Below are positions 7,107 through 52,125 of a stretch of 64,000 bases of DNA, in pieces. Position 1 is the first letter of the stretch; every line of letters begins with the position of its first letter. The notes below the pieces were generated by a model that saw nothing but the letters and a program-made list of their open reading frames with translations, ran no database searches and had not been told where the DNA came from. Source of the stretch: Penicillus capitatus (taxonomy: Eukaryota > Plantae > Chlorophyta). Both the position numbers and the translations under genes were made by a program. The stretch spans positions 558,001 to 622,000 of the forward strand of contig OZ287706.1 in NCBI GenBank assembly GCA_965649825.1, written 5' to 3'.

Positions 7107-7365
7107 GGACAAAAGTTTTTGTCCGGGCGGTGACTCCATCGTCGGCCCCCGAACTGGCTCGACGTTGTCCTTTCCCCGCCGTAACCCATCCAACTCGGCG
7201 CGGGCTCGCCAGACACATCCGGGTCAACTCTGATGGGACTACCCTCCTCTGTGTCCGGCGCAGGAATCGAACCCCCGCGGTCGTACTTCTCGAACTGGCC
7301 AACTGCACCATCCGCATACGGGTCGATCCCCACGGTCGAAAAGTTGCCGACCCCATCGTATGCCC
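7107..7365 (-). ncRNA. Candidate Pol III structured RNA, copy A (unidentified family or tRNA-derived element)
   Basis: A box TGGTGCAGTTGG (7310-7299) and B box GGTTCGATTCC (7273-7263). The core differs from copy B at only 2 positions over 259 nt. It ends in the GGACAAAAACTTTTGTCC palindrome containing a T4 run. Confidence 0.55.
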
Positions 7366-8941
7366 GCCCGTGACGACTTCGCTGACGACTCTTGTCGACG
7401 ATTTTGGTTGCACCTGTTTGCGAAGCTGTCACCTAAGCAGGCTGTTGCTGAGAGTTTCGTCCTACTGCACTGCGTCCACAGGCACTTCCACGTTGACCTG
7501 AATGGATAAACTCTACTAGCTCTTCGTTGCACGGTCAATTTGACTGAAATTTGAACGATATCCTTGCCCATCGGTTGACGGAGCTTGTTGATTGAGCCTG
7601 TTATCCGCTTCTGATAGTCAAGAACAGCCTTCTAATAAAAGCTTCAATCACCCGTAAACTCTTCAACCCACTCTGGCATGCACCTCGACAGCTCGTGGCC
7701 TTCCTGTCAGACGTCGCACAAAGGTGGAAGTAACGAGGAAGACGCTGGGGATAACGACTGGTTGCTTTTATTAAACATTGAATCTGTCCTAAACCACTCT
7801 TCCGATGTTCGACTTAAAAGGGATGTAATCCACGCCAGTTGTATACATCCAGCGTATGGAGATAGTAGACGAATGGAGAAAAGCAACTGCGGCGAGAAGT
7901 AACAAACGGTAAGTACCGCGGATGCGAGGGCTATTGCGTTTTCTCGTCTCTTGTGGTCTCCCCCGAGTTAATAAACTTTTCAAATCGCGTGTCTCTCGTA
8001 AACGACGATATGATTCCACTCGGCGTCGTCGCGTTGTCTATGTACAAAGAGACGCCTCTGTTCCGACGCCGAAGCAAGAAAGAAATCTGTTGATACGAAA
8101 CTCGACCAGCCGTACGTTTGCGCACACCTCGCAAACGCAACGTTCGCTGCCGGAACCGCAGCGCCGACGGCATGTGCCAGGTCGTCATGCGCTCAGAATC
8201 ACGAGAACACAACCGCGCCTCGCAGACGGACACGTTGAGACCAGAACATCCGAATTCCTCATATGCATGCACCACCGCACCCCGTTTTTCCTCGAGCGTG
8301 CGCAGCGAGACGGCGAACTTTGCAAGCTGGCAGGCAACCCTTTTACGGCACGGTATTCTGCGAGATAGCTTGTCTGAGGCTGCGGCAGAATGCCGTTGTG
8401 CTTCTAAGACGCGTCGACGATAAAAAATCAACTCCAGAGGCGAACCCGCGGCGCAGACGGCAATGAAGAAACAGACAGATGCTGACGTTGTTTCCGTGTC
8501 GGGTGGCAACCTTCGCGCCACTGCTCAACAAAGAAGCCGGACAAGTCACCGCGACGAATCGCGTTGCGTCGGTATTCGCCCTTTCTTCTCGCCTGCTGAC
8601 GCACTGGACGATTTCCGCTGCGGAGCGTCTCTACTTTTAGCGAAAAGACGTCCGTTCTGAGCGCGGATTGACACAGATGGGGTCTTCTGCTACGAAGACA
8701 CCGTCACTGTTGACACAGACAGATTCCTCTAAGAGGACGCCTGGCTGCCAAAATCGGCAAACGCGAGTTCGGAACAGCGTGGCGGGCAGTACTCGGGCGC
8801 ATATAAAAGCGCATGCCGACCCAGTCTGGACAGTGAACGTATTTACCTGAGTTCGATATTTCTAGTTCTTGTCTGCCCAGTCTGTTCGTCGTTTTTGTGT
8901 GGTCAGAGAAGCGTCCGTCAGAACAGCGATTCCAAGTCAAA

Positions 8942-13153: not shown

Positions 13154-16100
13154 TCATGTCGCAATCAAAAAACAGACCAGTTTGTTCATTGGATTCTCGA
13201 TGACGCCCAGTTCCATGCAGCTGGATTCCAAGGCAGGAACGAGATACAGAGTGATGTTGAACCCTTGGAGGTGCACAACGCCAGCGGCTTTACGGCCCTT
13301 GAGATGTCTCAGTAGTTTGTGGAAGAGGCGATTGGGCACAGTGGGAGTGATCTGGAAGAAGTGATGCTCGATTTTCTTGATCGCTGGGTTTTCGGCCATT
13401 CTGGAAACATATGTCATAGGAACTCTTGCCTCGATCGTGAGCTGAGGAGGTAATGAAATGGGACACTCTGCAGTGGCACCAGTGATTTCGCATTCGCGGA
13501 AGAAGATCTTGCCGGTCCATGCACCGTCCGGAGGCTGCTGGGGGATGCTTGGCTGCGTCACCTGGGCAGGATTGTCGACGGGCTGCTGATCCTTGACGTC
13601 TCGAGCGTTTCTGTAGGCATCCAGGAGAAGAGATTGCTGACGAATGAAGTCATCTGGATCCGCCTGTCCGTCTTCTTGGAACATGGAGAAGGCGACGAGA
13701 TTGCACATCAGATCATCGTCATTGCCGACACCACTCGATGGATGGCCTGTCCAGTACGAGGGGAGAGGCTCGATGATTTCGATTTCAGGTGTCTCGCCAG
13801 AACCCGATGGAGCCATCGGGTCTGTTGGTGCGCTTCTTCCAGAGGGGCGAGACGACGAAGACGACTCGGGTACGAACGTTGTCCTCAGATTCGGATGGTT
13901 GTGTCCACGGGCAGGACTCCGTTGCGCTGCTTCGACTGGCAGTGCATTGGAAGACTCGTGCGCATGAACACAACCACGACTTGCTGAGAAGCCTCCGTGT
14001 GCGGGACTGCGTCGATCTGCATCGAGCGGCAGATCATTCGCAGACTCATGCACAGGTCTCTTTCCAAGCATGTTCAGATAGTCTTCGTACGTCATTGCTG
14101 CTTCCTCTTTGACAGTAGATGCTTGCTCGCAGGCAGGCGACACGTGTGCAGATCCATCGATAGGGCTTTGATGGATCTCTTCGTGCACAGGCGTTTGGCA
14201 TTCCGCTTCGGCGGGCATGGCTTCGGACGGTTCCGTGACAGGATCATCCACTGGGTTCGATGGACTGCAGTGCACTGGAGTGACGCATTCGAGTTCCGTC
14301 GGTATGGCTTCAGATGATTCTGGGACAGCGGGTACAGGATCACGGTGAAGAGTTGGATACCTTCTGGTGGGCTCCGGAGTGAGACACTCGGCTTCGTCTG
14401 GTGCAGCTTCTGGCGATACATGTGCAGGATTCTCGACGGGGCTTAACTGGTAGAGTTGACGCAGTCGAGTGACGTAATCAATTTGGGCTGGAACGGCTTC
14501 AGACGACTCAGGTGCAAGTGCATCGTCACGGAAACGACATGAAAATCCTATGGTGGGCTCTGGTGTGACACATTCGGCTTCATGTGGTGCCTCATCTGGC
14601 GATTCAAGCGCGGGATCACGGAGAAGGCCTGAGTGTCTTCTGGTAGGCTCTGGTGTGACACATTCGGCGTCGTCTAATGCCTCATCTGGTGATTCGGGTT
14701 CAGAATCACGGAGAAGGCCTGAGTGTCTTCTGGTTGGCTCCGGCGTGACACATTCGGCGTCGTCTAATGCCTCATCTGGTGATCCGGGCTCAGTATCACG
14801 GAGAAGGCCTGAGTGTCTCCTGGTAGGCTCTGGTGTGACACATTCGGCGTCGTCTAATGCCTCATCTGGTGATCCGGGTTCAGAATCACGGAGAAGGCCA
14901 GAGTGTCTTCTGGTTGGCTCCGGCGTGACGCACTCGGCTTCATGTGGTGCATCATCTGGTGATCCAGGCACCGAATCACGGAGAAGGCCTGAGTGTCTCC
15001 GGGTAGGCTCTGGTGTGACACACCCGGCTTCTTCTGGCGCGTCATCTGGTGACCCGTGTAAAAGATCGTCAGTGAGGATAGGACAGGCTCTCTCGTATTC
15101 GTGCAAATGAACATATCTCACACACGAGGAGGCTTGATGTAAAGGACGATGTTGCATGCTTTTCTCGGTCGGCAATGAATCTGATATGGATAATTTGCGT
15201 GAAAGCTCTTCGACGAGGAAGGATGATTGGTCGTTGTCAGGTAGAGGTTGTTGCTGTTCTGCGTCGGTTGGCTTACTTGTCGAAGACTCAGCATCGAAGT
15301 CTTCTTCTTTAGGGCTTGGACAGACATCTTCGCAGTGCACAGGTTGCTGCAGCTCCACATCAGTGGGAAGAACTGTCGAAGACTCGGCGTGACAGTCTTC
15401 GCTAGGGCTTGGAACGGCATCTTCATCTTCAGCTTGCTTCTTCTCCTCTTCAGTTGGCAGGACTGTCGAAGGCTCATCAGGAACACCTTCTCTATGGCTT
15501 GGACAGTAAACATCTTCTTCTACAGACGCTGGCTTCTCCGCACCCTTTGACAGGGCTTCAAAGGACTCGTGCATGGGCTGCTCGATTGGACTTGATTTGT
15601 TGTTGTCATCTTCAGCTTGCTGCTCCACTGCAGCTGATACGACTGTTGAAGACTTATTCGGAACGTCTTCTTTATGGCTTGGAGATGCATCTTCTTCGTG
15701 CACAGGTTGTTTGTCTTCTGCTTGGGTCGATAAGACTGTCAAAGACTCGACCGCGACTTCTTCTCCGGGACTTGATGTTTGTGGAGTCGGATTAGGAATG
15801 TCTGCTGGCTTTGGTCGAGATTCTTTACTGTTGGACTCCTCTTCTACAGTGAACAAGAGATTTCCATTATAAGTACACTGCAGGTTCGTTGTACTTTGGG
15901 TAACTGCCTTCGTCTCTCTGTACTTAGGCGCCGAATGACTTGCAGGCGCCTCTGCTGTTCGGGATTTCTTCGGCTTTCTCTGGGCTTTCTTATCTGCAGT
16001 GTCTCTGGTAGTAGCCTCTGTCGGTGCATCAAACGTGTCCGGGTCGGATTCAGACGCCCTGGATACAGATGGACTCTTGCGCTTGGCTTCTGTGGCAAAT

Positions 16101-18396
16101 CCACGATCTGCCTTCTTTCTGTCTTTGGTGTTTACAGTCGATGTCTTGACCCTCCCTAAAAACACGGTGATTCGTATCCCCGATCTGAATAAACGATCGA
16201 TGAGCATGCATCGGCAGAACGATGCTCGATGCTTCGCGACTCAGGCACCTTCAGCGAGGGACTGTGTAGGCCGTTCGCGGCTAGGACCGATGTCGGCAGC
16301 AGGATCAGACCAGGACAGAGATCTCGGCGACACGCGGCGTTCCTGGCTCGCCTCTTCTTCGCGAGGTAGCAGATCGTTCCTCGATCTCTTTTTCACAGGA
16401 TAGCGACGATCGAGATTCCTAAGCGCGGGCTGCAGGACGCGCAAACACACCGTCATCTTCTCGATCGTCGGAGCTTCGATCAAGAATCCTGCGGATAGAT
16501 CACTCTTTGAAGAATGAGCGTCATCAGTGAGGTTGGGGCACCCTTTCGGATAGAGTCGTCGACTTTGATGATGTGCTGCGGAGCACGGCGGCCGTCGCTG
16601 TCAAAGCATCTGACCAGATCGTGGATCGTTGAGTGCGCATGCGATGCGTCCATCCACAGGAAGGCCGAGTAGTACTCATCCCTCATGCACCGTACGGATG
16701 GAACCAGCATGAATGCTGGGCGTTCCGTTTCGTATTCTGGATTCCCTTTCAGCCCTTGGTAACACTTCAGGGCCTCCCTAGAAATGACAAGTGAGATCGG
16801 ACTGATCGGAAAGCACTGTTCCAAACTTTGCAGAATCGAACACGACGAGAGCTCTGGCGAGCGAGACTCGGGGAAAGAGAACTCCGGAAACCCTTCCATA
16901 CTCGTTACATGCATCACTAATGTCACCGTTTCTCAGGTTTCCAGGCAGAGCCATGAACCAGATGACGGGTCCGTACTGGTCGGCCACCGAACAGGATGCG
17001 GATCCTGCATCCAACCCACTCATTATCCCCCGGGAGCCTTCCTGAACCTACCGCGCTCAAAATCCCTGCTCAACATGACCGGCGGATCATCGATGGGTGT
17101 GGCAGGGATCTGAGGGGCGTAGGGCACGGGCCCAGTCGGCGGAAGGGACTGTCGTCCGGGTTGGTCCTGCGGGAGACTGGGTCCAGACTCGACGCGATGG
17201 CGCAGCGACTTCTTCGGACGCCCTTCTCTCTCGTGTCCCAGCTCTTTTGCTTGCTTGTCCTCTATCAGTTTTCGTCGAGCTCTGGCCCATTTGGCGGCGT
17301 AGGCGTCCGCTGTCGTGCGCGATCGAAGTCCATCCGGTCCGGAGCGGGCGGCGAGGTGTGACTCTTCTGGACATCCTTCGTGCTCTCTCTTCCTCTCCGC
17401 TTCCTGTATGCGGATGAGGACGTTCCTGAGATTGTACACGTGTCTCATGTACGAAGAGTCCGGATGCTGTGTGTGCTGCCTTCCTGCACGGGTCACCCAA
17501 ACGATGCGTCAGCCACGTCGTGTCGCATCATCGTTGATCTCACTTTCGATGACGCTGTTGAGCATGTTGAGCGTCCATCTGAGGAGATCTTTGTCGGAGG
17601 CGTGAATCTCGTATGCCAGACTGTAGTTGTCTGGTGTCTCTGGCGGCAGCAGGATGCGATTGAAAAAGACATTGGCCGACTCGTGATAAGGCTTGGACAT
17701 GTCTGTCCAGATGCGGACGCACTCGGACAATATATCTCTTGCGTAGTGCTTCAGCCCTTTGGCCAGGGCATTCAGAATCATCCAGCACTCGGTGCGCTCG
17801 GGGGTCAGATCGATGGGGATACCGAGACTGGTGCGTGAGTGATCCATGTGCCTGCGAAGCTCGTACAGTTGCCTGCGGTCACACACATCACACCATGAAC
17901 TTTGCTGCTGTGTCGCTAACCGGAAGAGATGTGGTATGATCTTCATGAAGTGGGGCCTCATGTCCGGTGTCGTCCACTCGAACATGTCGTCGAGGACTGT
18001 CAGCGCGTCGTGACGCGTCTCTTCGCACAGACTGCGCTCTCGTTGAATCCGAAGTTCCGGTCGCCAGGAACTGATTTCGATCAGCGCAGAGACAGTCGTG
18101 CCGATGTTGGCCAGGTACTTCGGCGCCATCCTCCTCAGCATTCGCGCGGCCAGGCGTTTCTCCTGTGGCGTTTCCGACCGTGCGTGTTGCAGCACCGAGT
18201 GGTACCAATCTTCATCGTATGGCCCGTCGTCTGGCTGGGCCGCCTGGAACAACTTGAGGATTCGAAATAGGTCCCGAATGGGTTGCAGATTCGGCGCCGC
18301 CGTCGTCTCGACGGGGTTGTGCCGAGATCGACTGGTGACCCGACTGGATGACCCCTGCGGTGAACGTCTGCGTTTGCCGCGCATATCGTGATCCAT
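13154..18396 (-). CDS. ~1600-aa multidomain protein: API5-like helical N-terminus, RRM (+ RRM-like), acidic tandem-repeat region, C-terminal SPOC domain
   Basis: Six ORF segments join in frame through GT-AG introns of 60, 47, 49, 53 and ~78-93 nt. YHSVL...EKRLAARML...RHDAL matches the API5 N-terminus. VIWFMALPGNL...YGRV...RALVVFDSAKEALKCY is an RRM. WTGKIF...LPPQLTIEARV...LKGRKAAGVV...LYLVP is SPOC-like. Confidence 0.75.
14551..15060. repeat. Coding 90-bp tandem repeat (5 full units + 1 partial, degenerate copy at ~14365)
   Basis: Units start at 14551, 14641, 14731, 14821, 14911 and 15001. On the minus strand they encode ECVTPEPTRRHSGLLRDSEPGSPDEALDDA. Confidence 0.95.
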
Positions 18397-25043: not shown

Positions 25044-26427
25044 ATGAGTTCAATAGATTCTCATAACGATCCCCATCTCTGCAAACACTGCATCATGTAT
25101 TCGGAAGGTGCCGTTATCGACGGACGCTTTCGAGTCCTCCGCGTCCGTCTTTCGACAGTCGGGTACATCTGCGAGGTGTGGCTCTGTCGTCCGAGCAATC
25201 CATCCTCCACTCTGAGTCGACCTGTGTTAGTGCGAAAGGCTTTCGGACAAACTCCCGGTCACTGTGAAATGCCTTTCACTGGAGACCACCGCTTCTTCCA
25301 TCCGACAAGACATCTACGAGAAACAGAAACAAGTAAGCGTCTCAGCAGGTAGACCAACGCGCGCGCCTAGCTCTCTCGCTTTCAGGAAATGTGTAACCTT
25401 CTTCACTGTGGCACTCGACAGAACAATGAGTCCTTTGAGAGAGAAGTTGGAACGGAGAAGATCTATCACATTGTGCTCGTACGTTGCCTTGCTAGTCTCG
25501 GGTGCTTCCTGCAAGTGTATCACTCAGATTCATGCGCAGAGAACGCAATCCAGCGTTACTGCTGACTGGGAAGGAAGGTGAGGCGACTCGAGTGGTGTCG
25601 GCGGTGAACTCGAACGCTATCCTGTTCGTCCAGTGTTTCGAGAGCGGAAGAGAGGAAACAAGGACCAGGAAAATCATACGTCGTTAGACGTGGAGAGACC
25701 CATCTTGGAGCACATGTCCCTCCTGCGTCCTGCGGCGGTAAGACACTGTTACTTTGAGTTGTCCTCGCTGGCAGCTGAGATCAAGGGAAGTTCGTCTCCA
25801 TTGTTTGTAGGATGCCTGTATCTTCTTGTAGCTCTCATCTACTGCGCGATAGCTGTGCCCTTGACAGTTGGCGTCATCATCCGATTTCCATCTGAACGTA
25901 CGTTATGGAACATGCCTTCATCTTTGAAGCAACTCTTGGTATGTAGCAACGACTTGGATTGGTCCTATTATCATAAGCTCGCTCTTCGGCCTCGGATTGA
26001 TATCCAATTTCCCATATTTCTTCAGCCGTGAGCGGATCACGATCACCGCGACAGAGTTCGAAATTAGAAGAACTCTCGATTTCCAATACTGCATCTCCTC
26101 CCGAACAGAAGCCAGTGAAGAAGACAGCGCTAATGAACTGGAAGGGGTGATGCAGGGTTGTTTGACTCAACAAATATCTGGCAACACATCCGAACTAATG
26201 AGAGCACAGGTACGAATTCACTGTCTTCGAATGGGCGGTATTGTTGCGTTTACCGGCAGATAACCTTCTACGGTAGCGGCGACAGCGGTAGAGAACAACA
26301 TCTCGAATTGATCGGCAGCTTTGGAAAACGTCGTATTGCAAAGGCGATCTCTGCAGACGATGAAATGGCTTTCCTTGAAGGAGAGATCAATTCCTTCCTC
26401 CAAGACTTACGAGTCCTGGATTATTGA
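25044..26427 (+). CDS. Divergent kinase-like N-lobe fused to a hydrophobic/membrane C-terminal domain (possible pseudokinase or pseudogene)
   Basis: Spliced read IDGRFRVL...YICE|CERLSDKLPVTVKCLSL...|EMCNLLH...FERE...YHIVL resembles kinase subdomains I-V. No HRD or DFG motif was found. It is followed by the TM-like stretch LFVGCLYLLVALIYCAIAV. The exon structure is uncertain. Confidence 0.4.
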
Positions 26428-27060
26428 GGTCAAGGCCGATGCCTTGCATCAGACATTTCATTACACTGGCGAAGTGCCGCTAATGATTCTGCAACATCAC
26501 TTGTCTTTGACTCTCCTCCTGCGTTTCAACGATGGCACATGCCTGTTACACGCATACATGCCGCATTTTTAGTCATTAGTCAGGTACATGTCGCTGCACT
26601 ATCTCACGTCTCAATCAAGTAACATCATCGCCAATTTGCCATCTGTCTCGTCATTGACACCTTTCACTGTGTCGTGGCTGTTTCTCACTCAATGTCTCGC
26701 ACTTTGTTAGCGTTTTTGGTTATCTATTTGTACTAACTTACTCTTTATTGGAACGACGCAAGGAACGGATGTAAAGGGTTGTAAACATGCACTGAGCGCT
26801 CACTGACTAATACGCTGAAAGGTTGACGACTACTTACACCAAAAAAGCAACCCGTCGTAGCTGTGTTCGGTGCGTTCTTTTTTTGTCTGCTTGGCGATAT
26901 GCCTGCCGGTCCATCCTGTTCGCGTCAGTCACTCGTAGGTACTTTCCCCAGCCGATCTGAAACCATCTCAACAAAAATTCAGTTCTGGAGGACGGAATGT
27001 AACCGACTGTAGTCAAGGTGACGAATCCTCGCACAGCGTCGTTGATGCATCGGGCAAAAA

Positions 27061-27130
27061 ACCAAGACGCTGAACGTCGTCGACTCTGCTCTCGTGGCGT
27101 GCGTCATTGCATCGTTCCTGAGTCTGCCGC
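27061..27130 (+). repeat. 70-bp copy of a coding segment of the amino-acid permease gene (29878-29947)
   Basis: ACCAAGACGCTGAACGTCGTC...GAGTCTGC matches at 66 of 70 positions. Confidence 0.9.
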
Positions 27131-27959: not shown

Positions 27960-28825
27960 TACCTGTAAAAACAGAACAGAGTTTGCTGTCGATTGAGAAC
28001 TACTTTTCGCGATAGGCGACGGCGGCGGACGCGACGAATACGAAAGCAAATCTTTACAGCTCCGTATTCAGCGGCGAAAAGAATCAAAGGGCGAGAGGAC
28101 AAAAGTTTTTGTCCGGGTGGTGACTCCATCGTCGGCCCCCGAACTGGCTCGACGTTGTCCTTTCCCCGCCGTAACCCATCCAACTCGGCGCGGGCTCGCC
28201 AGACACATCCGGGTCAACTCTGATGGGACTACCCTCCTCTGTGTCCGGCGCAGGAATCGAACCCCCGCGGTCGTACTTCTCGAACTGGCCAACTGCACCA
28301 TCCGCATACGGGTCGATCCCCACGGTCGAGAAGTTGCCGACCCCATCGTATGCCCACAGGTGACGACTTCGTTGACGACTCTGGTGCCACTTCGCCTCCT
28401 CCCGTGCATCCGTGACGACTACGTTGACGACTTTAACACACAACGCTTGTATCATGTGACGACTCTTGTCAACTTCTGCAAGACCTGTCCGTTTCTGCGT
28501 TTCTCCTAATTCACCACATCGCCTTTCACCTCTCAAGGCGTACTCTCACAGACGAAGACTTCTACTTCGACGATAGGGAGGAGATTACGAGAGTGAACTT
28601 GGACTTCGTCGAGCTATTTTGGCAGCATCTTTGCGACTCTCTCGGATACCGATTTTCCTGTGTGCTGTAAGTGGTGAATGCGTCCGCGGGATACCGAAGA
28701 GGAAACCAGTGGACAAAAAGTCGCGTTAAATGTCTTTAAAAGCAAGTGCAAACATCCGTGTCAATTTCTCTCGGACTAAAGAGTGAAACAGTGAAGGCGC
28801 TTTCCAATAAGCTACAGTAGCAGGC
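27960..28825. repeat. Dispersed repeat copy B (homologous to 51258-52125, inverted)
   Basis: Shares the core with all copies and a further ~470 bp of diverged upstream sequence with copy D only. Confidence 0.9.
28097..28355 (-). ncRNA. Candidate Pol III structured RNA, copy B
   Basis: A box 28300-28289 and B box 28263-28253. 257/259 identical to copy A. Confidence 0.55.
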
Positions 28826-29206: not shown

Positions 29207-30636
29207 ATGATCCGCGCATCGAAGCCGCACGGTCGACTACTGGACAGCGCGTTTCGAACAGCGGGTTCGAAGCGTCGTGCGAATCTGCGACGCGACTCCA
29301 CTAGGCGACGGGTTCAGAAATCAGAGAACGACGTCGCCGTTTCGAAGGAGATCCAGTCGACGACCGGCCGAACGCAGCGTCTGTGGTCCAACCTCGACCC
29401 GGAGACGCTCAAACACGAGCCTGGAAACGTCTTCGGCGCCGCCGCCCTCGTGGCAGGCACAACGATCGGCGCCGGCATCCTTGCCCTCCCCGCCGTCACC
29501 CAGGTCTCCCGACAGCCTTCTGCCTTTCGAACGAGAGCAGTGCTTCTCAGGAGTCCGGCTTCGTCGCGTCGAGCGTCGCCATCTGCGGCGTCTGCGCTTT
29601 CTCGGTGGTCACGGGGCTCCTCATCGCCGAGGTCAACATAAACACGATGTGCGAGCTCGGCTCCGGAGGCGTCTCGCTGACGTCCATGGCTGAAAGGACT
29701 CTGGGTCCTCTGGGCACGCGGGTCTCGAGCGCGGCCTACGTCTTCCTTCACTACGCCCTCCTCGTCGCCTACATATCCCGAGGCGGTAGCATCCTGAGCG
29801 AGTGGCTCGACGTGCCTCCGTGGACAGGTGGCATCATCTTTGCCTTGCCGCTCGGCGGCCTGTGCTACGCGTCCAGCACCAAGACGCTGAACGTCGTCAA
29901 CTCTGCTCTCGTGGCGTGCGTCATCGGATCGTTCCTGAGTCTGCTGCTGGTCGGCAGCGGAGGCATCCAGCTCGACAACCTCGCCAAGGCAGACTGGTCG
30001 GCTGTTCCCGCAAGCCTCTCCATCCTGTCCCTGGCCTTCGTCTACCACAACATCGTCCCAGTAGTGGCGTCGGACCTGGAAGGCGACATCCAGAAGGTGC
30101 GCACGGCCGTCGTCTTGGGCACAGTAGTGCCGCTGATCATGTTTCTGTCGTGGGACGCCACGATACTCGGATCCGCCTCGTCTGGTAGCGCTGCAGATCC
30201 TCTGGGAGCCCTACAGTCGAGCAACCCGCTCTTCTCGCCGCTGGTGCAGAGCTTCTCTCTGTTTGCACTGGCCACCTCATACATCGGATTCGTTCTGGGC
30301 CTCGCGGACTTCATCTCCGACGCCGTGAAGTTGCCCTCCGGTCGACAGCCCGTTCCGTACCTTGTCGCATTGCTGCCGCCTCTGGGACTGGCGTTCACCT
30401 ACTCCGATGTGTTCTTTAAAGCCCTGGACTACGCCGGGACATACGGAGTGCTCGTCCTGTTCGGCGTGGTTCCAGCTCTGATGGCTTGGAGCGAGCGATA
30501 CGGCGGAACGACGGTCACGTCGACGCAGATCGTTCCAGGAGGTCGCCTGGCGCTCATCTTCATCGGAGGAACGGCGGCTGCCGTCATTGCCAATGAGTTT
30601 GCCGAGCTGATTAGCAGCATCGGGCACTCCAGCTGA
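29207..30636 (+). CDS. Aromatic amino acid (Trp/Tyr) permease, TyrP/Mtr family, probably plastid-targeted
   Basis: GNVFGAAALVAGTTIGAGILALP, LSLAFVYHNIVP and FALATSYIGF motifs are present. One intron, 29504-29550. The N-terminal extension is Arg/Ser-rich. Confidence 0.9.
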
Positions 30637-36218: not shown

Positions 36219-36965
36219 ACAACGCGGAAGGATTAGTTCTTTTGAGATATCGAATCTGTTTCGCAGAGATCTCTCTGACACATTTAAACGTTGTACATAC
36301 ATACATCTCTGTCCGCGATAGTGAACGGTTTTTTTCAGGAAGTGTTAACCAGACGGCTTCTCTCAAAAATTCTCGTTTTGGTTCGCGGATGTAGATAGAA
36401 AGTATGTGCAGGTTCGAAATCTTGTCGCAGGATGTCTTCGTCTACAAGAAGGAACTTCGCAGATTAAACAAGGAAAGAATGAACTGGCTAGCTGCGTCTT
36501 AATCCACCCTTGCTCTTGATAGAGTTTCTTCAGCATCCAGACAATCATATTCATAAACAGAGAGACGCCAAAATGGCGGAGTGCTGATTGTAAAGCACGA
36601 AAGATCCCAATGCGGAATAACAAAGTGCTTGGCAAAAAGGGTCTTATTAGAAGGCTTTCCGCACATCATCTACATGTTTCGTTTTGTGATATAGTCAGTC
36701 GTCAGGATTCGTCGTCGTTAAGTCGCCACGAATGCATACTGGGCGGGCGACGGCGTTGTTAAGAGTCGTGGCGTTAGTACTATCCTTAGGTGTCGGAGTC
36801 GATATTTGCAAACAGGTGCAAGCAAACAAAGTCGTCGACAAGAGTCGTCAACGTAGTCGTCATAGATGCACGGGAGGAGGCGAAGTGGCACCAGAGTCGT
36901 CAACAAAGTCGTCACGGACGACGCGGATACGGCGAATACGGTGGGCATATGTTGAAGTCGGCGCG

Positions 36966-37201
36966 TTCTCGACCGTGGGGATCGACCCGTATGCGGATGG
37001 TGCAGTTGGCCAGTTCGAGAAGTACGACCGCGGGGGTTCGATTCCTGCGCCGGACACAGAGGAGGGTAGTCCCATCAGAGTTGACCCGGATGTGTCTGGC
37101 GAGCCCGCGCCGAGTTGGATGGGTTACGGCGGGGAAAGGACAACGTCGAGCCAGTTCGGGGGCCGACGATGGAGTCACCACCCGGACAAAAACTTTTGTC
37201 C
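36966..37201 (+). ncRNA. Candidate Pol III structured RNA, copy C
   Basis: A box 36998-37009 and B box 37035-37045. Stems 37049-58/37091-100 and 37066-76/37118-27; terminal palindrome 37184-37201. Confidence 0.55.
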
Positions 37202-37486
37202 TCTCGCCCTTCGATTCTTTTCGCCGCCGAAAACAGAGCTGTAAGGATTTGCTTTCGTGTCCGTCGCGTTCGCCGTCGTCGCGTAGCGTGAACCGTGGTT
37301 CTCTATCGACAGCAAGCTCTGCTCTGTGTTTACAGGTGTGCTAGCATACACACATGTCATTCAGCGCTCCAGAATCTCTACATCAGTGCTTTAAGTCCTC
37401 GTCGTTGCTTCTTCCCGAGTTGCAGAGTGTAAATCTCGAAGGGGGTTTCCTGTTTCGTTGCAAAATGAATCCTCTTCTTTCAGACG

Positions 37487-38220
37487 GTGTTGGCTGATCA
37501 TTCGTTTGCAGTCCTGGGACAGTACATAACTTGCTCACACGTCTGTGTGGACAGAACGCGAACTCAGAGCCTCCGCCTGCTGCAAGGTATGGTGGGTAAT
37601 GCAGAAAACTCTTTGCTGCCAGGCGAGTTGATTTGGCTGACGACAAACACTATGACTGCTTCGATCCCGTTCAGTATAAGTTGGCTTGTGGAAGTTGACG
37701 CTCGATGGGCGCGTGAGTAGCCGAAAATGCCACAAAGACGACTGCTTAAAACATAGGCATTCAACAATTCGCTCTTCTGTGAGACGTGGCCTGCGACAGA
37801 AACCGCATTCGAACTCCGCCGGAAGCATTAAGTGTGGTCCGAGGAAGAAAACTCTCTCTACATGTTCTAATCCGGCTGCCCTTCTAGTTGGATCTTCCTC
37901 CCTCCGAAGAGCATGAATTGCATTTTCTTTTGACATGTTAGTTGAGGCGGACAAGTTTGTAGCACCTCACTGGTAATTGGTCTCTCATCGACAAGTTCTC
38001 TTTGCGACAGGCGCGTCCTGATGCGATAGGTTACTCAACTGCTGGAGAATGTGTCTTTACGGAAGAGGTTATTCGATACTTCGAAAGGCAATGGATCGGT
38101 CAGCCATCCCTGCTATCGGTCCTCGCCTTCGACACTGACTGCTCCGTCCTCAGATGTCGAAACGGGAGTGCGAGGTTTCCATCAGCATCCCTCCAGTCGC
38201 AAAAAATGCTCGACTGAGCA
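37487..38220 (+). pseudogene. Possible decayed Mutator/MULE-like transposase remnant (copy C)
   Basis: Collinear degenerate motifs LADHSF, MF*SG...IFLPPKSMNCIFF*H and IRYFERQWIG...RCRNGSARF, with stops and one frameshift. Confidence 0.3.
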
Positions 38221-45043: not shown

Positions 45044-45261
45044 TGTCATTGGGACGAACGCGCTTCGCGTCGGCCATGGGTGCTGCGTAGCAAATATTTT
45101 TAAAAAACCAAAACGTTTCTTACACACAACTCATCATGAGTCTCTATTTAATGCTTTCGATCGCAGCATCCCATCAGTTCTGTCTGTCGCATCGGACCGT
45201 CATCTTCCCGATCCCTCGTCACCAATGTGACATCATGGTTCCGTACCATGAGGAGTTCACA
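45044..45261 (-). repeat. 3' LTR
   Basis: Identical to 49723-49940. On the minus strand it contains a TATA-like CATTAAATAG and a TGTAA poly(A)-type signal. Confidence 0.97.
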
Positions 45262-45464
45262 CGCTTCTCTGCGCGATCAAAACTCCGAAGGGATCTCCGT
45301 TCCACTCTGAGCTCCTTAGCTCGTTGCAGTGGTCAACAGCTTGAAGATTCGATAGGCGTATCACATTAGCCAGCCCTCAAGGGCCCGGGATCTCTACCCA
45401 GTGATGTACCAACGGAAGACAGTCTGAGCGCTTCACTCTTTGATGACCCTCTCCCGATAGAGTG

Positions 45465-48260
45465 TCATACATAAGGCCTCAAATTGTCCACATGGCAAAT
45501 GATCTTCTGACTTGACCCAATACGTCTCAATCGGCAAATATGCGGTGAACACTGTTCGACGATCACAAAGGGCCCAACCCAGAAGGGACTCAGTTTGTCG
45601 TCGAGCCTTTCCATCCTCACGGCATCGAAGACCCATACTTCCTCTCCGATGGATGGCTGAAACGGTTCCATTCGTCCAGAAACCCCGAGTTCTTTGTCTC
45701 GAGCTTCTTTGGTCCTCCAAGCGGCAATCTGTCTGTCTCTCGTCACCTCTTCAAGTGTAGCCTGCCGACCTCCGATAGTGATGCCCGACCATAGGTACCA
45801 AGGAGCGAATCCGGTAATGCTGTGCGGCGCCTGGTTTGTGCAGTCGACTGCCAATGGCAGCACGTCGATCCACGTCTTTCCAGGGTGATCGAGCAACATT
45901 CTGCGCAAACGATTGACCAACGTCTGATTCCATCGTTCGTTAAGTCCGTTCGAATGATGGGCATGCGGAGCAGTCAGTATACTCTGAGCGCCCCATTCCT
46001 CTGTCCACGCGCTGAAGGTCGGCGAGCTAAAATAGCTTGCTCGATCTGACAGAATTCGCTTAGGGGCTCCATTCTCTCGAAACCACCATTCCAGCCCTTT
46101 CTGAGCTGAAGCCGTCGTGGATCGCTTGAACGCCATAGCCGCTCCCAGCCTTGTCAAATGATCGACCATTGTAAAGACATAACGTACCCCCGTACGGGCA
46201 GCCCGTAGGGGGCCAACGAAGTCAATAGAAATGAGTTCTCCAGCACGGAGGGGTTCGGGCAGCCGTCCCAACGGCACGGTCCTGACCTTTGGTTGAAATT
46301 GTTGACACACACGACACTGACGACAATAGGCTTTGACTTCCTCCCGTGTAACTGCTAATCCTAGTTCTTTGGCAATCTCCCAGGTCTTTTCCGCTCCGAA
46401 GTGCCCCGCGTGAGCTCCGGCCAAATCCGATGGCCTCTCTCTCATTGTGGAGGCCGTTATACCACTTGACGAATCCGGAAATAGCTCGCTCTGCCTCGAG
46501 AGAAGATCTGGCAGCACATTGGAGTGCCCCGGCAAGAAACGCAACCGTGGGCAACACTCCTGGATTTGGTCCAGCCGTCGTCGGATGAAGGGACTTCGAT
46601 TGTCTGCATTTGCGAGGCTGGCCACCGAAGCGTTGTCACTGAACACCGTCACTCTTCCTCCAAAGATCCATGGTTGAAACTTGCGAAGGGCTTTGACCAC
46701 TGCCTCCATTTCCAAGTGATTCGAAATCTGATGCTTCAATGCTTGCGGCCACAAACCAGAAGCACAGCAAATTATTTGCTTTTGTTGCAATAGCACTGCA
46801 CCCCAGCCACTTCCCGACGAGTCCACTGCGATGCCAAAGTCCGCTGTTTCTTTTGCGTGTGTACATGCCACTGTGTGTTGTTCCAATCCACTCAGAAATG
46901 TCTGCCAATCCTCCACCCTTCCCGATTCTTCCGCCTTCCGTAGCGCACCTTGAACCACTCTGCCGTTCACCACGAATCGAACAAGTTGCTGGAACCAGCC
47001 CTTGATCGCTCTCCATTCTGTTTGCGTTCTGGGAGGCTGTAGCTTCTGAAGGCGTGCTATCGCTGAGGCACTTGCACGCCAACCTGTTGGAGTCACAACG
47101 TGTCCCAAGAAGTCAAATACCTCTTGCATGAAGGAGCACTTATCCGGTCGCATTCGCCATCCCCGTTTTTCCAGAATCTGGAGTACTTGGCGTAGATCTC
47201 GGAGATGTTCTGGTACTGATTGCGAGAGCAAAAGAATATCATCCATGTAAACCACCACTTGGCTCTGCACTGCTTCATCCATTTCTGCAATCGCAGGTCT
47301 CAATGCTCTTAGGAATTCACTAGGTGAATTGACGTATCCGAAGGGGAGTCGTTCGTAGACGTAGAATTTCCGTCGCAAACACACTCCAAAGCAATGATGC
47401 AGCTTGGGAGCCAGCTCTACTTGGAAATACGCGTTTTGCAAATCGATTGCTGACCCGACCACATACGGGCGCACCCCAGCGATCGTATGCTCTCTATTCA
47501 CTGCCAGGAAGGGCTGCGCTTCTACGCACGAGTTCAGCTTTCGAAAATCGAGCACCAATCGCACATCTCCAGTTTTTTTCGGAATACAGAACGCCGGGAT
47601 CAAATATGGCTCTTGGGACGTCTCCCTGACCACCCCCAACTCTACTAACTTGTTGATTTCTTCTAGAACTAACGACTCTTCGCTGGGTGATATGGAGGGC
47701 GATGATTGTTGTCTTGTCAGGCGATGCTGAAATGGGATATCTGTCACCACATGATCGACACATTTCCCAAGATTGCCACTGGTTAAGTCGTGGAATTCTC
47801 GCAATATATTCTGCAAATCTTCTCCATACGCAACAATGCTTCTCAGCGGCAACGGAATTCCTCTTTCTGTCAACGGAATTTGCCCTCTGTCTGGAACCAG
47901 TACATGCGTCACATTGGTTTGGATGATGCACAGTGGCATCCTAGGCGTCAAATGTTGTGGCATCCGACCTCGATTCTCTAGCATTCCCCATACCCTACAT
48001 CCATTGCTCTGTGGAGAAAACCTGACTCCTGGGCAAGTCAGCGCGTCCGTGATGGACCCTAAACTTCCCTTGACAAACTTAACGGGAAGGATAAGCTTTC
48101 GGCATTCCCCTGGACCCAGCACCCACGATCTGTTGAAAGGGAGTACCAGATAGCAGTTTCTCAGAAATGGAAGGTATAGAGGGGTCTCCAGCAACTCAAA
48201 GCTTAACACCACTGGGCTGGATTCAGTGATGCTCCTTGGATGTTTTTTTGCCCTTTTAGC
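45465..48260 (-). CDS. pol: pol ORF (dUTPase-like, RT, RNase H, integrase), entered by -1 frameshift
   Basis: RT VVYMDD. RNase H DSS..E..D..D. Integrase HHCC (AHAGH...CRQC) and DDE (IDF, SDR, NERWN), with a C-terminal GPF motif. Confidence 0.95.
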   Translation of the reverse strand, partial: AKRAKKHPRSITESSPVVLSFELLETPLYLPFLRNCYLVLPFNRSWVLGPGECRKLILPVKFVKGSLGSITDALTCPGVRFSPQSNGCRVWGMLENRGRMPQHLTPRMPLCIIQTNVTHVLVPDRGQIPLTERGIPLPLRSIVAYGEDLQNILREFHDLTSGNLGKCVDHVVTDIPFQHRLTRQQSSPSISPSEESLVLEEINKLVELGVVRETSQEPYLIPAFCIPKKTGDVRLVLDFRKLNSCVEAQPFLAVNREHTIAGVRPYVVGSAIDLQNAYFQVELAPKLHHCFGVCLRRKFYVYERLPFGYVNSPSEFLRALRPAIAEMDEAVQSQVVVYMDDILLLSQSVPEHLRDLRQVLQILEKRGWRMRPDKCSFMQEVFDFLGHVVTPTGWRASASAIARLQKLQPPRTQTEWRAIKGWFQQLVRFVVNGRVVQGALRKAEESGRVEDWQTFLSGLEQHTVACTHAKETADFGIAVDSSGSGWGAVLLQQKQIICCASGLWPQALKHQISNHLEMEAVVKALRKFQPWIFGGRVTVFSDNASVASLANADNRSPFIRRRLDQIQECCPRLRFLPGHSNVLPDLLSRQSELFPDSSSGITASTMRERPSDLAGAHAGHFGAEKTWEIAKELGLAVTREEVKAYCRQCRVCQQFQPKVRTVPLGRLPEPLRAGELISIDFVGPLRAARTGVRYVFTMVDHLTRLGAAMAFKRSTTASAQKGLEWWFRENGAPKRILSDRASYFSSPTFSAWTEEWGAQSILTAPHAHHSNGLNERWNQTLVNRLRRMLLDHPGKTWIDVLPLAVDCTNQAPHSITGFAPWYLWSGITIGGRQATLEEVTRDRQIAAWRTKEARDKELGVSGRMEPFQPSIGEEVWVFDAVRMERLDDKLSPFWVGPFVIVEQCSPHICRLRRIGSSQKIICHVDNLRPYV
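48187..48250 (-). promoter_or_regulatory. -1 programmed ribosomal frameshift signal (A_AAA_AAC + H-type pseudoknot)
   Basis: In-frame slippery heptamer at 48248-48242, 8-9 nt spacer, stem 1 GCATCACTG/CAGTGGTGT. Loop TCCAGC pairs with downstream GCTGGA. A -1 shift joins the two ORFs. Confidence 0.85.
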
Positions 48261-49756
48261 TCATCGAGCTCAGTTTGGAGTCTTTGCATTTCTTCGAGGA
48301 GATGGGTCACATCAGTTTGGTTAAGGACCTTTAGCTGTGCCTGCGTGCATGTTATTTCTTCACCATTTCTGCGCCAGATTCTCTTTTCTTGGCAATCAAT
48401 GAGAAGTTGATTTGTAGCGAAGAAAGGGAATCCCAGGATGAGCGGCGGGCCTTTGCCTCCAATCACAAACGCTTCCATCTCATATGGATGGTCATCTATA
48501 CGGGCTTCGATGTTTATGCGTCCCAGAATTGGAGAGGCACTTCCATTTCCCAGCGAAACGTATAGGTTTCCACACTGTGTTACTCTCTGCTGGATTCCCA
48601 ATGCTTTCACAGTAGCCTCTTGAATGAAACATGCAGTGGCGCCAGTATCCACCAAACCACTGATCTTGGTCCCTTCGATGCAGGTCGGCACGTTCATGCT
48701 AGCCTTTTCCACCGGGGAAATTCGAGAGCAGACCAGAGGGTAACCCTTGTACATGGTATACAGCCCTGGTTTCGAAAGAACATCCCCGTCTTCTTCGGTC
48801 AGTTCAAGCTCCAAAGGATCGTCAACATCTTCGGTTTCGGTTTGTAAAGCCCTGAGTTGGGTGGCCGGCCTCGCGTCAAAGGAGTTCGAGGCGAGATATT
48901 TCTGCGCTTCTCGTCGAAAACGGGGCACCCGCATCAAACGTTTCCATGCGATCATCACATGGTTCGGGTTATTGATGTCCAACCGTCGGTGTTGCCCGCT
49001 TGATGGCTGCGATGTTTCTCCACCCACAAGTGGAAGTTCCAATCTGGCGGTCTCCGGTTTGCCACTAGCCTTTTGTCGACAAGTAGCTTCATCGAGGTAT
49101 TCGACCAGTTGTCGATATGAGTATTCTCCAGCGTCCGTCATGGCCAGCACCTCGAGCTTGTTTCGCACCAGCGTCTCTATTTGTATCAAACTCAGTCCGG
49201 CTTTTCCGGTGTGGATCAATGCCCGACGTATCTCTTCAGGCATTTGATGATAAAGGATCCGGACGGCCTTCTCCATCGACACCTTTTGCTGGGCGACAAA
49301 GGACCGGGCTTCCCGAACGAAACGGTCCACGTAGACGAGTAAGTTTTCCTTCGCTACATCACGTTTCATGCTACGGAGCTGGTCCTCGGGCGCCACGAGG
49401 TCATCTTTCGGCAACAGCGCTGCCAAACGTTTATTCAATACTTGCCAACGAAGATCGTCTACTGCGGTTTCTTCGGACGCCGTTTCACCTCCAAGCTCTT
49501 CGCGACATGCCTTTTCGTCCAGGCGTCGGACGGCTTTTAGCTGAGGCAAAACAAGTTTCGAGGCTGCCGACTGGGGTTCGAGGCTGTCCAACAACGCTCG
49601 GTCTCGTTCACGTCCTACCGCCGTAGTGATTTCCAGCGATTCAAACAACCACTCGTGAATGTCTCGAGTATACTCCGAGTAAACAAGCCAGGTTCTCGTT
49701 CGAGAACCTCGCTCCGAAACCATGTCATTGGGACGAACGCGCTTCGCGTCGGCCAT
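48203..49756 (-). CDS. gag: gag-protease ORF
   Basis: 517-aa ORF with aspartic protease motif GLVDTGAT and ILGFPF. It starts inside the 5' LTR. Confidence 0.9.
   Translation of the reverse strand: MADAKRVRPNDMVSERGSRTRTWLVYSEYTRDIHEWLFESLEITTAVGRERDRALLDSLEPQSAASKLVLPQLKAVRRLDEKACREELGGETASEETAVDDLRWQVLNKRLAALLPKDDLVAPEDQLRSMKRDVAKENLLVYVDRFVREARSFVAQQKVSMEKAVRILYHQMPEEIRRALIHTGKAGLSLIQIETLVRNKLEVLAMTDAGEYSYRQLVEYLDEATCRQKASGKPETARLELPLVGGETSQPSSGQHRRLDINNPNHVMIAWKRLMRVPRFRREAQKYLASNSFDARPATQLRALQTETEDVDDPLELELTEEDGDVLSKPGLYTMYKGYPLVCSRISPVEKASMNVPTCIEGTKISGLVDTGATACFIQEATVKALGIQQRVTQCGNLYVSLGNGSASPILGRINIEARIDDHPYEMEAFVIGGKGPPLILGFPFFATNQLLIDCQEKRIWRRNGEEITCTQAQLKVLNQTDVTHLLEEMQRLQTELDELKGQKNIQGASLNPAQWC
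49704..49722 (-). promoter_or_regulatory. Primer-binding site, initiator-Met-like
   Basis: TGGTTTCGGAGCGAGGTTC directly abuts the 5' LTR and resembles the plant iMet PBS TGGTATCAGAGCCAGGTTTC, with mismatches. Confidence 0.7.
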
Positions 49757-49940
49757 GGGTGCTGCGTAGCAAATATTTTTAAAAAACCAAAACGTTTCTT
49801 ACACACAACTCATCATGAGTCTCTATTTAATGCTTTCGATCGCAGCATCCCATCAGTTCTGTCTGTCGCATCGGACCGTCATCTTCCCGATCCCTCGTCA
49901 CCAATGTGACATCATGGTTCCGTACCATGAGGAGTTCACA
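49723..49940 (-). repeat. 5' LTR
   Basis: Identical to 45044-45261. Confidence 0.97.
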
Positions 49941-50230
49941 GCATCTGATGTCACGTGAGTGTATTATAAGAGATCGATCGTGCATGCAGGACGTCCCGCA
50001 GAGCAACATGACTGTGTCGCACGTCAAAGACAACGACTCTTGGGAAGGACAGCGATGCATTGAGTGTCCTTGTAGATGAAGATGTGACGTTCCTCGAGCA
50101 ACTTCAGATGCAGATCGAGGAACTCTTTTCGCAACGATAGAGACACGTTCTCGAGACATGGTTATTCGCTGTCGATAAGAGGCAAGTGTAAAATGCGCTT
50201 CTGGTCGCATCGCATAGTCGTCCAAAGTCA

Positions 50231-51257: not shown

Positions 51258-52125
51258 TTGTAGCTTGGTTGAGAGCGCATGTTCTATTTGTTACATTGCC
51301 TAGCCCGAGAGCGCATGGCAACCGTGTTTACACGTACTTGTGGGGACATCTAACTCGACTTTCAAGTTTCTACTTGTTCCTCTTTGGTATCTCGGGGACG
51401 CATTCGCCACTTACAGCACACAGGAGAAATCAGTCTCGGCCAGACTCGCAAAGATGCGTCTAGAATAGCTCGACGAAGTCCAAGTCCACTCTCGTAATCT
51501 CCCCTCCATCGTCGAAGTAGAAGTCTTCGTCTGTGAGAGAACGCCTCGAGATGTGAAGGAGACGTTGTGAATTAGGAGAAACGCAGAAACGGACAGGGTC
51601 TTACAGAACTTGACAAGAGTCGTCACATGAGCACGGTAGTCAGGATTCGAAGTCGTCGACAAAGTCGTCACGGACGCACGAGAAGAGGCAAAGTGTCACC
51701 AGAGTCGTCGGCGAAGTCGTCACCGGTGGGCATACGATGGGGTCGGCAACTTCTCGACTGTGGGGATCGACCCGTATGCGGATGGTGCAGTTGGCCAGTT
51801 CGAGAAGTACGACCGCGGGGGTTCGATTCCTGCGCCGGACACAGAGGAGGGTAGTCCCATCAGAGTTGACCCAGAAGTGTCTGGCGAGCCCGCGCCGAGT
51901 TGGATGGGTTACGGCGGGGAAAGGACAACGTCGAGCCAGTTCGGGGGCCGACGATGGAGTCACCACCCGGACAAAAACTTTTGTCCTCTTGCCCTTTGAT
52001 TTTTTTGGCCGCTCAAAACAGAGATGCGAAGATTTGCTTTCGTATCCGTCCGAACATGCGCCATCGTTACGTATTGCGAAAAGCAGAATTTCCTAGACGA
52101 ACTAGACTCGGTTCTGCGTTTACAG
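51258..52125. repeat. Dispersed repeat copy D (homologous to 27960-28825, inverted)
   Basis: Reverse-complement comparison with copy B. Confidence 0.9.
51728..51986 (+). ncRNA. Candidate Pol III structured RNA, copy D
   Basis: A box 51783-51794, B box 51820-51830, palindrome 51969-51986. Three substitutions versus copy B in the core. Confidence 0.55.

Follow-up and report, generated by a model that had tools for sequence, protein, structure and literature searches.

What kind of sequence leaves four nearly identical copies in a single 64-kb stretch of DNA while the sequence on either side of each copy drifts apart? [quoted passage not shown] Our joint reading, which we consider probably right, is that copies A to D are structured small-RNA genes that are both selected and converted and are driven from upstream, in a subfamily also equipped with an A box, a B box, and a T4 run. 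The predicted RNA matches no family catalogued in Rfam.

On this reading, each copy would be the gene for a structured non-coding RNA of ~220 nt, laid out as a 5′ hairpin (P1, with an inserted arm in the window subfamily), hairpins H1 to H3, and a single-stranded 3′ tail. The clustered genes would have spread by DNA-level duplication along with their flanks, with purifying selection preserving the RNA body and ectopic gene conversion homogenizing the paralogs within a genome. Transcription would be driven from upstream elements: in distant relatives, these would be a TATA box ~28 nt before P1 and blocks reaching to ~95 nt upstream. The window subfamily, in which the TATA box is degenerate, would rely on AGTCGTC arrays instead and would have gained an A box and a B box of the consensus tRNA type, the latter built from the 3′ strand of P1, plus a T4 run directly at the 3′ end.

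Near-identical cores in diverged flanks

All four copies lie at the sites where they had been annotated. The pattern TGGTGCAGTTGG-N25-GGTTCGATTCC, that is, an A box and a B box 25 nt apart, matches the window exactly four times (7263-7310 and 28253-28300 on the minus strand, 36998-37045 and 51783-51830 on the plus strand), against an expectation of 0 from shuffles, and it is exact in 4/4 copies. Over the segment corresponding to 36986-37196, pairs of copies differ by 0-3 of 211 nt (98.6-100% identity), whereas identity falls to 47-95% in the 100 nt upstream of the core and to 71-91% in the next 141 nt downstream, which bears out the earlier description of conserved cores inside diverged flanks. 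Homology of copy C to the other copies begins at 36943, its first 43 nt being more diverged (81-84%). Beyond the core, flank homology is long and unequal: copies A and C have 1,259 nt in common and copies B and D 710 nt, and the sequence common to all four reaches TTTACAG, ~140 nt past the core.

The limits of the RNA bodies in Table 1 follow the near-invariance among the four copies, except that the start of the copy C body (36972) is taken from the position of the TATA box in homologues. On the 3′ side, all matches between subfamilies stop sharply 198-207 nt past the A box, counted from its first base; on the 5′ side, they end loosely. A palindrome that contains TTTT (GGACAAAA/TTTTGTCC) had been described as the end of each copy; it is present in the window copies, but the palindrome is not kept in relatives, nor is the T4 in other genomes.

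Table 1. Features of the small-RNA copies and their upstream regions, by position in the window
Feature	Position	Strand	Basis or remark
Copy A, predicted RNA body	7111..7336	-	Limits of near-invariance among the four copies
Copy A, array	7372..7390	-	Two exact AGTCGTC, one near-exact
Copy B, predicted RNA body	28101..28326	-	Limits of near-invariance among the four copies
Copy B, array	28362..28464	-	5 AGTCGTC motifs
Copy C, array	36830..36913	+	Heptamer search; five AGTCGTC in two 52-nt modules (36838-36884, 36890-36936)
Copy C, putative TATA remnant GGGCATATG	36943..36951	+	Degenerate, ~28 nt before P1; alignment A6, columns 7-18
Copy C, predicted RNA body	36972..37197	+	~225 nt, base of P1 to T4 run; near-invariance limits
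P1, 5′ strand GTGGGGATCGA	36975..36985	+	Pairs with 37037-37048; G-C to A-U and G-C to C-G swaps across clades
A-box-like TGGTGCAGTTGG	36998..37009	+	In inserted hairpin 36991-37030, which is not in the Botrimarina-MAG clade
B-box match GGTTCGATTCC (37035-37045) and P1 3′ strand (37037-37048)	37035..37048	+	Pattern, alignment, covariation
Hairpin H1, 10-bp stem GCCGGACACA/TGTGTCTGGC around two mini-hairpins	37049..37100	+	Compensatory changes, MFE folds
Hairpin H2, invariant 14-nt loop AGTTGGATGGGTTA	37104..37134	+	Contains the family-wide invariant 21-mer
Hairpin H3, variable stem, conserved loop AGTTCGG	37144..37168	+	C-G to U-G to U-A series
Conserved 3′ tail CCCGGACAAAAAC, then T4 (37194-37197)	37181..37197	+	Second T run at 37216-37219
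Copy D, array	51618..51721	+	5 AGTCGTC motifs
Copy D, predicted RNA body	51757..51982	+	Positional ortholog of L119, between upstream gene and VPS13 3′ end

A family that extends to other genomes

The initial annotation had counted four copies; this holds for the window, but the family is larger, with at least 13 loci in the ENA metagenome assembly to which the window also belongs (ERZ25074695; window contig ctg339056, 22x coverage) and more in three others. About 35 further copies were recovered from four assemblies (ERZ25074695, ERZ26696514, OZ245997.1, and CBDHGO01). The predicted small-RNA gene is found, in clusters, in no fewer than four related genomes of uncultured eukaryotes. Loci L111-L122 were reached through 17 predicted ORF products, with translations of the core as bait, and alignment A5 comprises 15 copies, namely those of the window and of loci L111-L121, including L119 from ERZ26696514. 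The invariant 21-mer CCGCGCCGAGTTGGATGGGTT gave 19 matches in a prokaryote genome collection, of which 17 are real stretches; the remaining two (L126 and L128) are chance matches and not members of the family. Two contigs of a "Botrimarina sp." MAG (CBDHGO010000007.1/8.1) hold 18 copies along with a Ty3/gypsy element, and OZ245997.1, a 6.9-Mb "Putridiphycobacter sp." chromosome, holds three. Scans of viral contigs for the family returned zero matches.

Judged by their content, the Botrimarina-labelled contigs at least are eukaryotic, and both these and the Putridiphycobacter-labelled contig look like mis-binned contigs of a host or protist. Contigs of hosts carrying the RNA unit stand under bacterial MAG names in public records. 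At the level of individual loci, the records labelled as bacterial MAGs that hold the eukaryotic RNA gene are L123-L141, and those labelled Botrimarina contain repeats of ~8 kb at 93-99% identity. Some of the Botrimarina-type copies are paired: 506-nt units of promoter plus RNA (1757-2260 and 6184-6688 in L123, and likewise in L130 and L132) form convergent inverted pairs ~3.9 kb apart.

Two layouts occur in the family. In Botrimarina-type members, a stem with a 4-nt loop takes the place of the whole A-box hairpin. OZ245997.1 carries both layouts: L134 has heptamer arrays and A and B boxes, and L124 and L140 have a TATA-type promoter.

A predicted fold backed by compensatory changes

Covariation in relatives had been suggested as a check on the RNA, and compensatory changes were indeed found. 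In an alignment of 17 sequences from four genomes, the five-helix fold (tested as seven helical segments: P1, the inserted arm, H1 with its two mini-hairpins, H2, and H3) has 27 cells with two-sided changes versus 10.1±2.3 in shuffles (0/500), a count in which changes common to related sequences enter several times, so that we estimate some six independent compensatory events. Overall, 97.0% of cells are paired, two-sided changes fall at seven pairs, and the covariation score is 0.140 versus 0.081 in shuffles (0/500) and ≤0.048 in slid controls; these statistics lean towards the drawn structure, because part of it was drawn after the variation had been seen. Both the G-U pairs and the fold z-score (-3.2 versus -0.9) fix the transcribed strand.

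Individual helices differ in how they vary. H1 is found in every single-sequence MFE fold, and its pairs change from A-U to U-A in seven sequences, from G-C to U-A in L119, and from G-U to G-C. P1, given the positions of its two strands, includes the B box. No variation is seen in the H2 and H3 loops or in the 3′ tail (in RNA form, AGUUGGAUGGGUU, AGUUCGG, and UCACCACCCGRACAAAAAC, respectively), and the peripheral arms are variable: Botrimarina-type copies are missing the inserted arm and have an expansion hairpin directly 3′ of H3. Such invariant loops suggest protein binding, and the predicted layout as a whole would fit a ribonucleoprotein scaffold. Two other pairings, one of 36955-36971 with 37100-37116 and one that would join the A-box region to the 3′ tail as a terminal stem, are not kept across copies or clades and were rejected. 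In L125, L137, and L139, the expansion hairpin contains a telomere-repeat-like sequence (GGGTTAGGGCTTAGGG), and sister copies have unrelated sequence there.

Two promoter layouts and the polymerase

The A box matches a consensus of the TRGCNNAGTGG type, with TGGTGCAGTTGG invariant in the four window copies and present in 14/15 copies of A5; it is kept as TGGTGCAGCTGG in L124 and L140 and is missing from the Botrimarina-type clade. Against the consensus GGTTCGANTCC, the B box of the window copies is exact (11/11), and it is altered in 5/15 related copies; at the same position, Botrimarina-type members, L124, and L140 have GGCGGATCCTT or GGTGGATCCTT. The B-box segment co-varies with its 5′ partner strand and is thus primarily a helix strand. 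The boxes are separated by 25 nt, or by 37 nt from start to start, which, depending on the way of counting, is at or below the spacing usually quoted for type-2 promoters, ~30-40 bp (PMC7279448). At the 3′ site, T4 occurs in 11/15 copies of A5, and CTATTG stands there in L119 and in all other genomes, so that distant members end in CTATTG versus CTTTTG in the window copies. Relatives in other genomes have T runs at a variable distance, and one type has no T4 within 75 nt.

Upstream, arrays of AGTCGTC in the sense orientation, with a spacing of 11-13 nt, lie 60-190 nt before all 15 copies of the window subfamily; within the window, the heptamer forms arrays only upstream of the four RNA copies and is clustered nowhere else. 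Botrimarina-type members and the TATA-type relatives on OZ245997.1 instead have a TATA box (GGGGGTATAGG) ~28 nt before the first helix, and the blocks CATTACGTCGCATC and AATCGACCTACCGTTTCC are kept between these two genomes over ~95 nt upstream. At the aligned TATA site, window copies have the degenerate GGGCATATG or GGGCATACG.

These results leave the type-2 Pol III label partly standing. The exact A and B boxes and the T4 of the window copies agree with it, but the B box is a helix strand, the A-box hairpin is missing from one clade, and T4 is not kept. Since the A-box hairpin, B box, and T4 are not family-wide, Pol III is not an inference for the whole family and may be wrong for the window too. 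A transcript start just upstream of 36998, as had been expected, is at odds with homology to the TATA-type relatives, by which the start of copy C is probably near 36972; its transcript would end at 37194-37197. A switch to an internal promoter may have taken place in the window subfamily, whose losses and gains (a good TATA box lost; heptamer arrays, A and B boxes, and T4 gained) would fit a move to TFIIIC-dependent Pol III transcription, as in genes whose internal boxes go together with elements in the 5′ flank (PMC7279448, PMC10137851).

The main rival reading keeps the same structured RNA but has RNA polymerase II (Pol II) make it throughout the family from an snRNA-type external promoter, with the A and B boxes and T4 incidental. 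It would explain why relatives have a TATA box and upstream blocks without a B box and, in one clade, without an A box; why every other genome has CTATTG in the place of T4, one type being without T4 within 75 nt; and why the B-box segment forms one side of a helix and co-varies with the other side. Furthermore, a block ACCCGAATCG lies ~40 nt before the TATA box and resembles the plant snRNA upstream element, TCCCACATCG; in plants, a wide spacing marks Pol II genes. However, deriving an exact 11/11 B box from GGTGGATCCTT takes several substitutions plus compensating changes in the partner strand, and the gain of the B box coincides with the loss of the TATA box, with the heptamer arrays, and with a T4 exactly at the conserved 3′ end. 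Neither an Sm-site consensus nor a 3′ box was recognised, and the sequence of an unplaced lineage does not reveal its polymerase. On balance, we judge Pol II transcription throughout the family to be unlikely.

A bolder form of our preferred reading, the upstream-driven genes of a subfamily with A and B boxes, is one that we put forward tentatively, as a possibility with rather less than even chances: the RNA would be a new snRNA-like ribonucleoprotein scaffold of a poorly sampled algal lineage, and its promoter would have been rebuilt from an external TATA type to internal A and B boxes, with the B box made from the 3′ strand of P1, the partner strand changing to compensate, and both layouts persisting as paralogs within one genome. 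Having two promoter layouts among paralogs of a single RNA would offer a natural experiment in the passage between external and internal Pol III promoters, and they would also show a promoter box superimposed on an RNA helix. If expressed, the RNA would be a conserved, abundant-looking, structured RNA without catalogued relatives in a lineage whose non-coding RNAs are almost unannotated.

Selection and gene conversion

Locus L119, of assembly ERZ26696514, has the same neighbors as copy D, namely an upstream gene (82% identical) and, on the other side, the VPS13 3′ end (89%); this gene context makes it the positional ortholog of copy D. The cores of copy D and L119 are 80-90% identical, the adjacent flanks ~60%, and sequence further out ~35-45%, with random-level identity further upstream; the L119 interval lacks the 4.9-kb gypsy element as well as some other DNA. 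The old paralogous pair formed by copy C and L118 is similar in kind: the neighboring GST gene is 82% identical, and the RNA bodies have 4/211 differences.

Paralogs are closer to one another than to the ortholog. Copies within ERZ25074695 have at most 23/211 mutual differences and 31-38/211 relative to L119 (the one copy of a second species in this comparison), and this range includes copy D, the ortholog of L119. The comparison of copies A and C is a mosaic (36940-38198 versus 7368-6110) in which tracts of 250-465 nt with at most two mismatches, including long runs of 100% identity, are separated by patches of 10-20% divergence. Gene conversion by itself can yield identical tracts, as with the stretch of 465 nt with 2 mismatches outside the core. 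This mosaic is the signature of recent ectopic gene conversion. That paralogs are closer mutually than to the ortholog, together with the mosaic tracts, argues for gene conversion on top of selection. As in concerted evolution, paralogs within a genome are closer than orthologs, and either the arrays or the TATA blocks are kept. Both halves of the earlier suggestion, selection or homogenization of a multi-copy non-coding RNA, are thus supported, by the D/L119 ortholog and the compensatory changes on the one hand and by the mosaic tracts on the other.

Allelic comparisons add two cases. The region of copy A is 97% identical over 6.5 kb to the allelic L117, on a 41x contig of ERZ25074695 that is probably the other haplotype. 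Alleles L113 and L115, of the same assembly, are 98.6% identical over 5 kb, yet they have 12/211 differences in the RNA; L115 is changed at otherwise invariant positions of the A box, B box, and H2, and it would be a copy in decay or else the product of conversion by another paralog.

Two similarities outside the copies concern the DNA around them. Part of the Trp/Tyr permease gene, 70 nt long, recurs 2.8 kb upstream with 94% identity (27061-27130 and 29878-29947), and 860 nt of the window near copy B (25651-26511) are 75% identical to positions 16-876 of L118. Both are evidently traces of old segmental duplications around the RNA genes.

No match to tRNAs or catalogued RNA families

The initial annotation had stated that the copies do not fold as a full tRNA and show no hallmarks of known RNA families, and both statements withstood closer comparison. 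ARAGORN finds no tRNA or tmRNA in the window or in any of the loci; forced to a threshold of 80%, it draws a poor cloverleaf in one copy, which does not recur in relatives, and there is no Rfam tRNA match at E values up to 10. Rfam 15, whose families include snRNAs, U3, 7SL, RNase P/MRP, vault, Y, telomerase, and 5S RNAs, gives no gathering-level match in the window or in 21 loci, and searches at E values up to 10, which included three divergent members, give chance-level matches only. By eye, the RNA has no Sm site, box C/D, H/ACA, U1-U6 hallmark, or telomerase template.

Several partial likenesses were considered and dropped. A likeness to box C of 5S rRNA (TTGGATGGG...) is a 9-nt identity that 58/500 shuffles match. 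Candidate likenesses seen by eye to U2, U4, the ACAGAGA of U6, CR-I of RNase P/MRP, and the loop of the 7SL Alu domain were dropped because they fall at copy-variable positions or in the arm that a clade is missing. As for telomerase RNA, a template on the C strand is missing; the TTAGGG-like stretch of some Botrimarina-type copies belongs to a variable hairpin and is on the wrong strand, and there are no telomeric arrays nearby.

Coding sequence, DNA element, or mobile repeat

Two frames are open across the core, of 170 and 184 codons, and gene callers predict proteins on many copies, so that a protein-coding exon is a reading that the sequence invites. Nevertheless, the most conserved part has 1-nt indels at several columns of the alignment, and the predicted products jump frames. 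Copies that differ by 1-nt indels are not what a coding core would leave; this and the switching of frames place the conservation at the nucleotide level. None of the predicted products on the copies has a precomputed Pfam domain, and the coding reading is largely refuted. The RNA unit has instead been repeatedly mis-called by ORF callers as a protein of 110-230 aa. The segment could also be conserved as a DNA-level regulatory module, such as an insulator or enhancer, given that B boxes can be TFIIIC-bound boundary elements. Against this, no gene lies downstream of copy D for such a module to act on, since VPS13 converges on the copy with its 3′ end 690 nt away, and the strand-specific G-U pairing and compensatory changes point to RNA. 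Taken together, a coding exon or a DNA-level module is very improbable.

A mobile or formerly mobile repeat, such as a SINE related to tRNA or a larger element's terminal repeat, would owe its conservation to recent spread and conversion. What makes this worth weighing is that the unit is multi-copy and has A and B boxes and a T run, that gene conversion is demonstrably active, that in two genomes Ty3/gypsy elements are found no more than 1-2 kb away from copies, and that the convergent inverted pairs of the Botrimarina MAG sit inside larger repeats. These repeats, however, outrun the pairs (7.8 kb at 97.7%), and the DNA between the paired units has no Pfam or Rfam match. A profile search (nhmmer) finds full-length copies only, four in the window and one per locus, with no fragments in the 64-kb window plus ~130 kb of loci. 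There is no A-rich or simple-repeat tail, the 3′ end of the RNA being fixed at CAAAAACTTTT; no terminal inverted repeats surround the RNA unit; and in each of four comparisons, whether allelic, orthologous, or paralogous, the unit is present on both sides. Unlike those of a SINE, the flanks are homologous over variable lengths, and an upstream array accompanies every copy.

The copies are also poorly explained by spread alone, in that a positional ortholog is kept between species with its core well above its flanks and compensatory substitutions keep the helices across four genomes. Nor does the family resemble a real tRNA-derived SINE: a metagenome scan for an A box and a B box separated by N20-30 returned 110 unrelated loci (L001-L110), mostly a termite-gut tRNA-derived SINE on JGI contigs, which is very different and has many deletion variants. 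Altogether, we consider a mobile repeat quite unlikely, and the view that the copies are not an ordinary young SINE was upheld, with no fragments, A-tails, or presence/absence differences found. An LTR or terminal-inverted-repeat element was likewise rejected, there being no terminal inverted repeats and the LTRs of the window gypsy element being unrelated. The termite-gut repeats themselves have a consensus of roughly GGGGCACGCGGTGGTGCAGTTGGTTGAGGCACTGCGCTACAAGCCGGAAGGTCGCGGGTTCGATTCCCGATGGTGTCATTGGAATTTTTCAT, with many internal deletions, and are unlike the RNA family.

Likeness to known small-RNA systems

Four known systems resemble the family in part.

(i) The rodent 4.5SI and 4.5SH RNAs come from genes that have type-2 promoters and also depend on 5′-flank elements (PMC7279448, PMC10137851). 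As here, internal A and B boxes are combined with gene-specific 5′-flank elements that ordinary SINE copies lack. The layout of the copies is also alike, 4.5SI having few linked copies 4-40 kb apart and 4.5SH forming arrays within longer repeats, and so are the narrow taxonomic range and the T-run terminator of Pol III (PMC7279448, PMC10137851). The rodent RNAs are, however, ~100 nt long and visibly derived from the B2 and B1 SINEs, whereas the predicted RNA here is ~220 nt with five helices and no SINE relative seen. Here, too, the boxes are not in all family members, and there are relatives with a TATA-type external promoter.

(ii) Genes of the snRNA type are multi-copy, clustered, and homogenized by concerted evolution, as are those described here, and they are alike in size and in their hairpin-rich folds. 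Members of this class (U snRNAs, U3, 7SL, and MRP in plants and algae, as well as type-3 Pol III genes in animals) share with the distant relatives a TATA box ~30 nt upstream plus further elements (for type-3 genes, PMC7279448). In contrast, the RNA here matches no such Rfam family and has no Sm, C/D, H/ACA, or U1-U6 motifs by eye.

(iii) tRNA-derived SINEs are likewise multi-copy and 150-300 nt long, with A-box and B-box motifs (PMC10137851). They differ from the family, which has no cloverleaf-derived head, no tail repeat, and no fragments but does have conserved flanks and an upstream array; moreover, a locus is orthologous between species here, and covariation points to selection on RNA structure.

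(iv) Genes in the style of yeast RPR1 and SNR52, as well as those of U6, 7SL, and RNase P RNA, show that lineages can differ in the promoter that serves one RNA, which is internal and tRNA-like in some and of the external TATA/PSE type in others, and that promoter boxes can sit in a 5′ part of the transcript. The present case is unlike these in that both layouts appear to coexist as paralogs on OZ245997.1 and in that the predicted B box is carved from a structural helix and not from a removable leader.

Genomic neighborhood

The window is nuclear DNA of an intron-poor eukaryote, in which VPS13 is a single ORF of 2,830 codons. Its other genes include a Ty3/gypsy element, GST, trypsin-like genes, and the Trp/Tyr permease, whose best named homologues are green-algal and plant proteins at ~55% identity. 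This weak hint, taken with the lack of introns, would suggest as a guess an alga of the Archaeplastida, perhaps a red alga. An ORF of 1,017 codons on the minus strand (13154-16207) has no Pfam match and contains six tandem 90-nt (30-codon) repeats, 63-88% identical, at 14436-15146. The Ty3/gypsy element (45044-49946, minus strand) is a young LTR retrotransposon, with LTRs of ~218-225 nt that are 99-100% identical and open frames for gag-protease (48203-49756) and for RT-RNaseH-integrase (45465-48212). A similar Ty3/gypsy element, with 142-nt LTRs, lies 1.2 kb from the RNA copy in L125.
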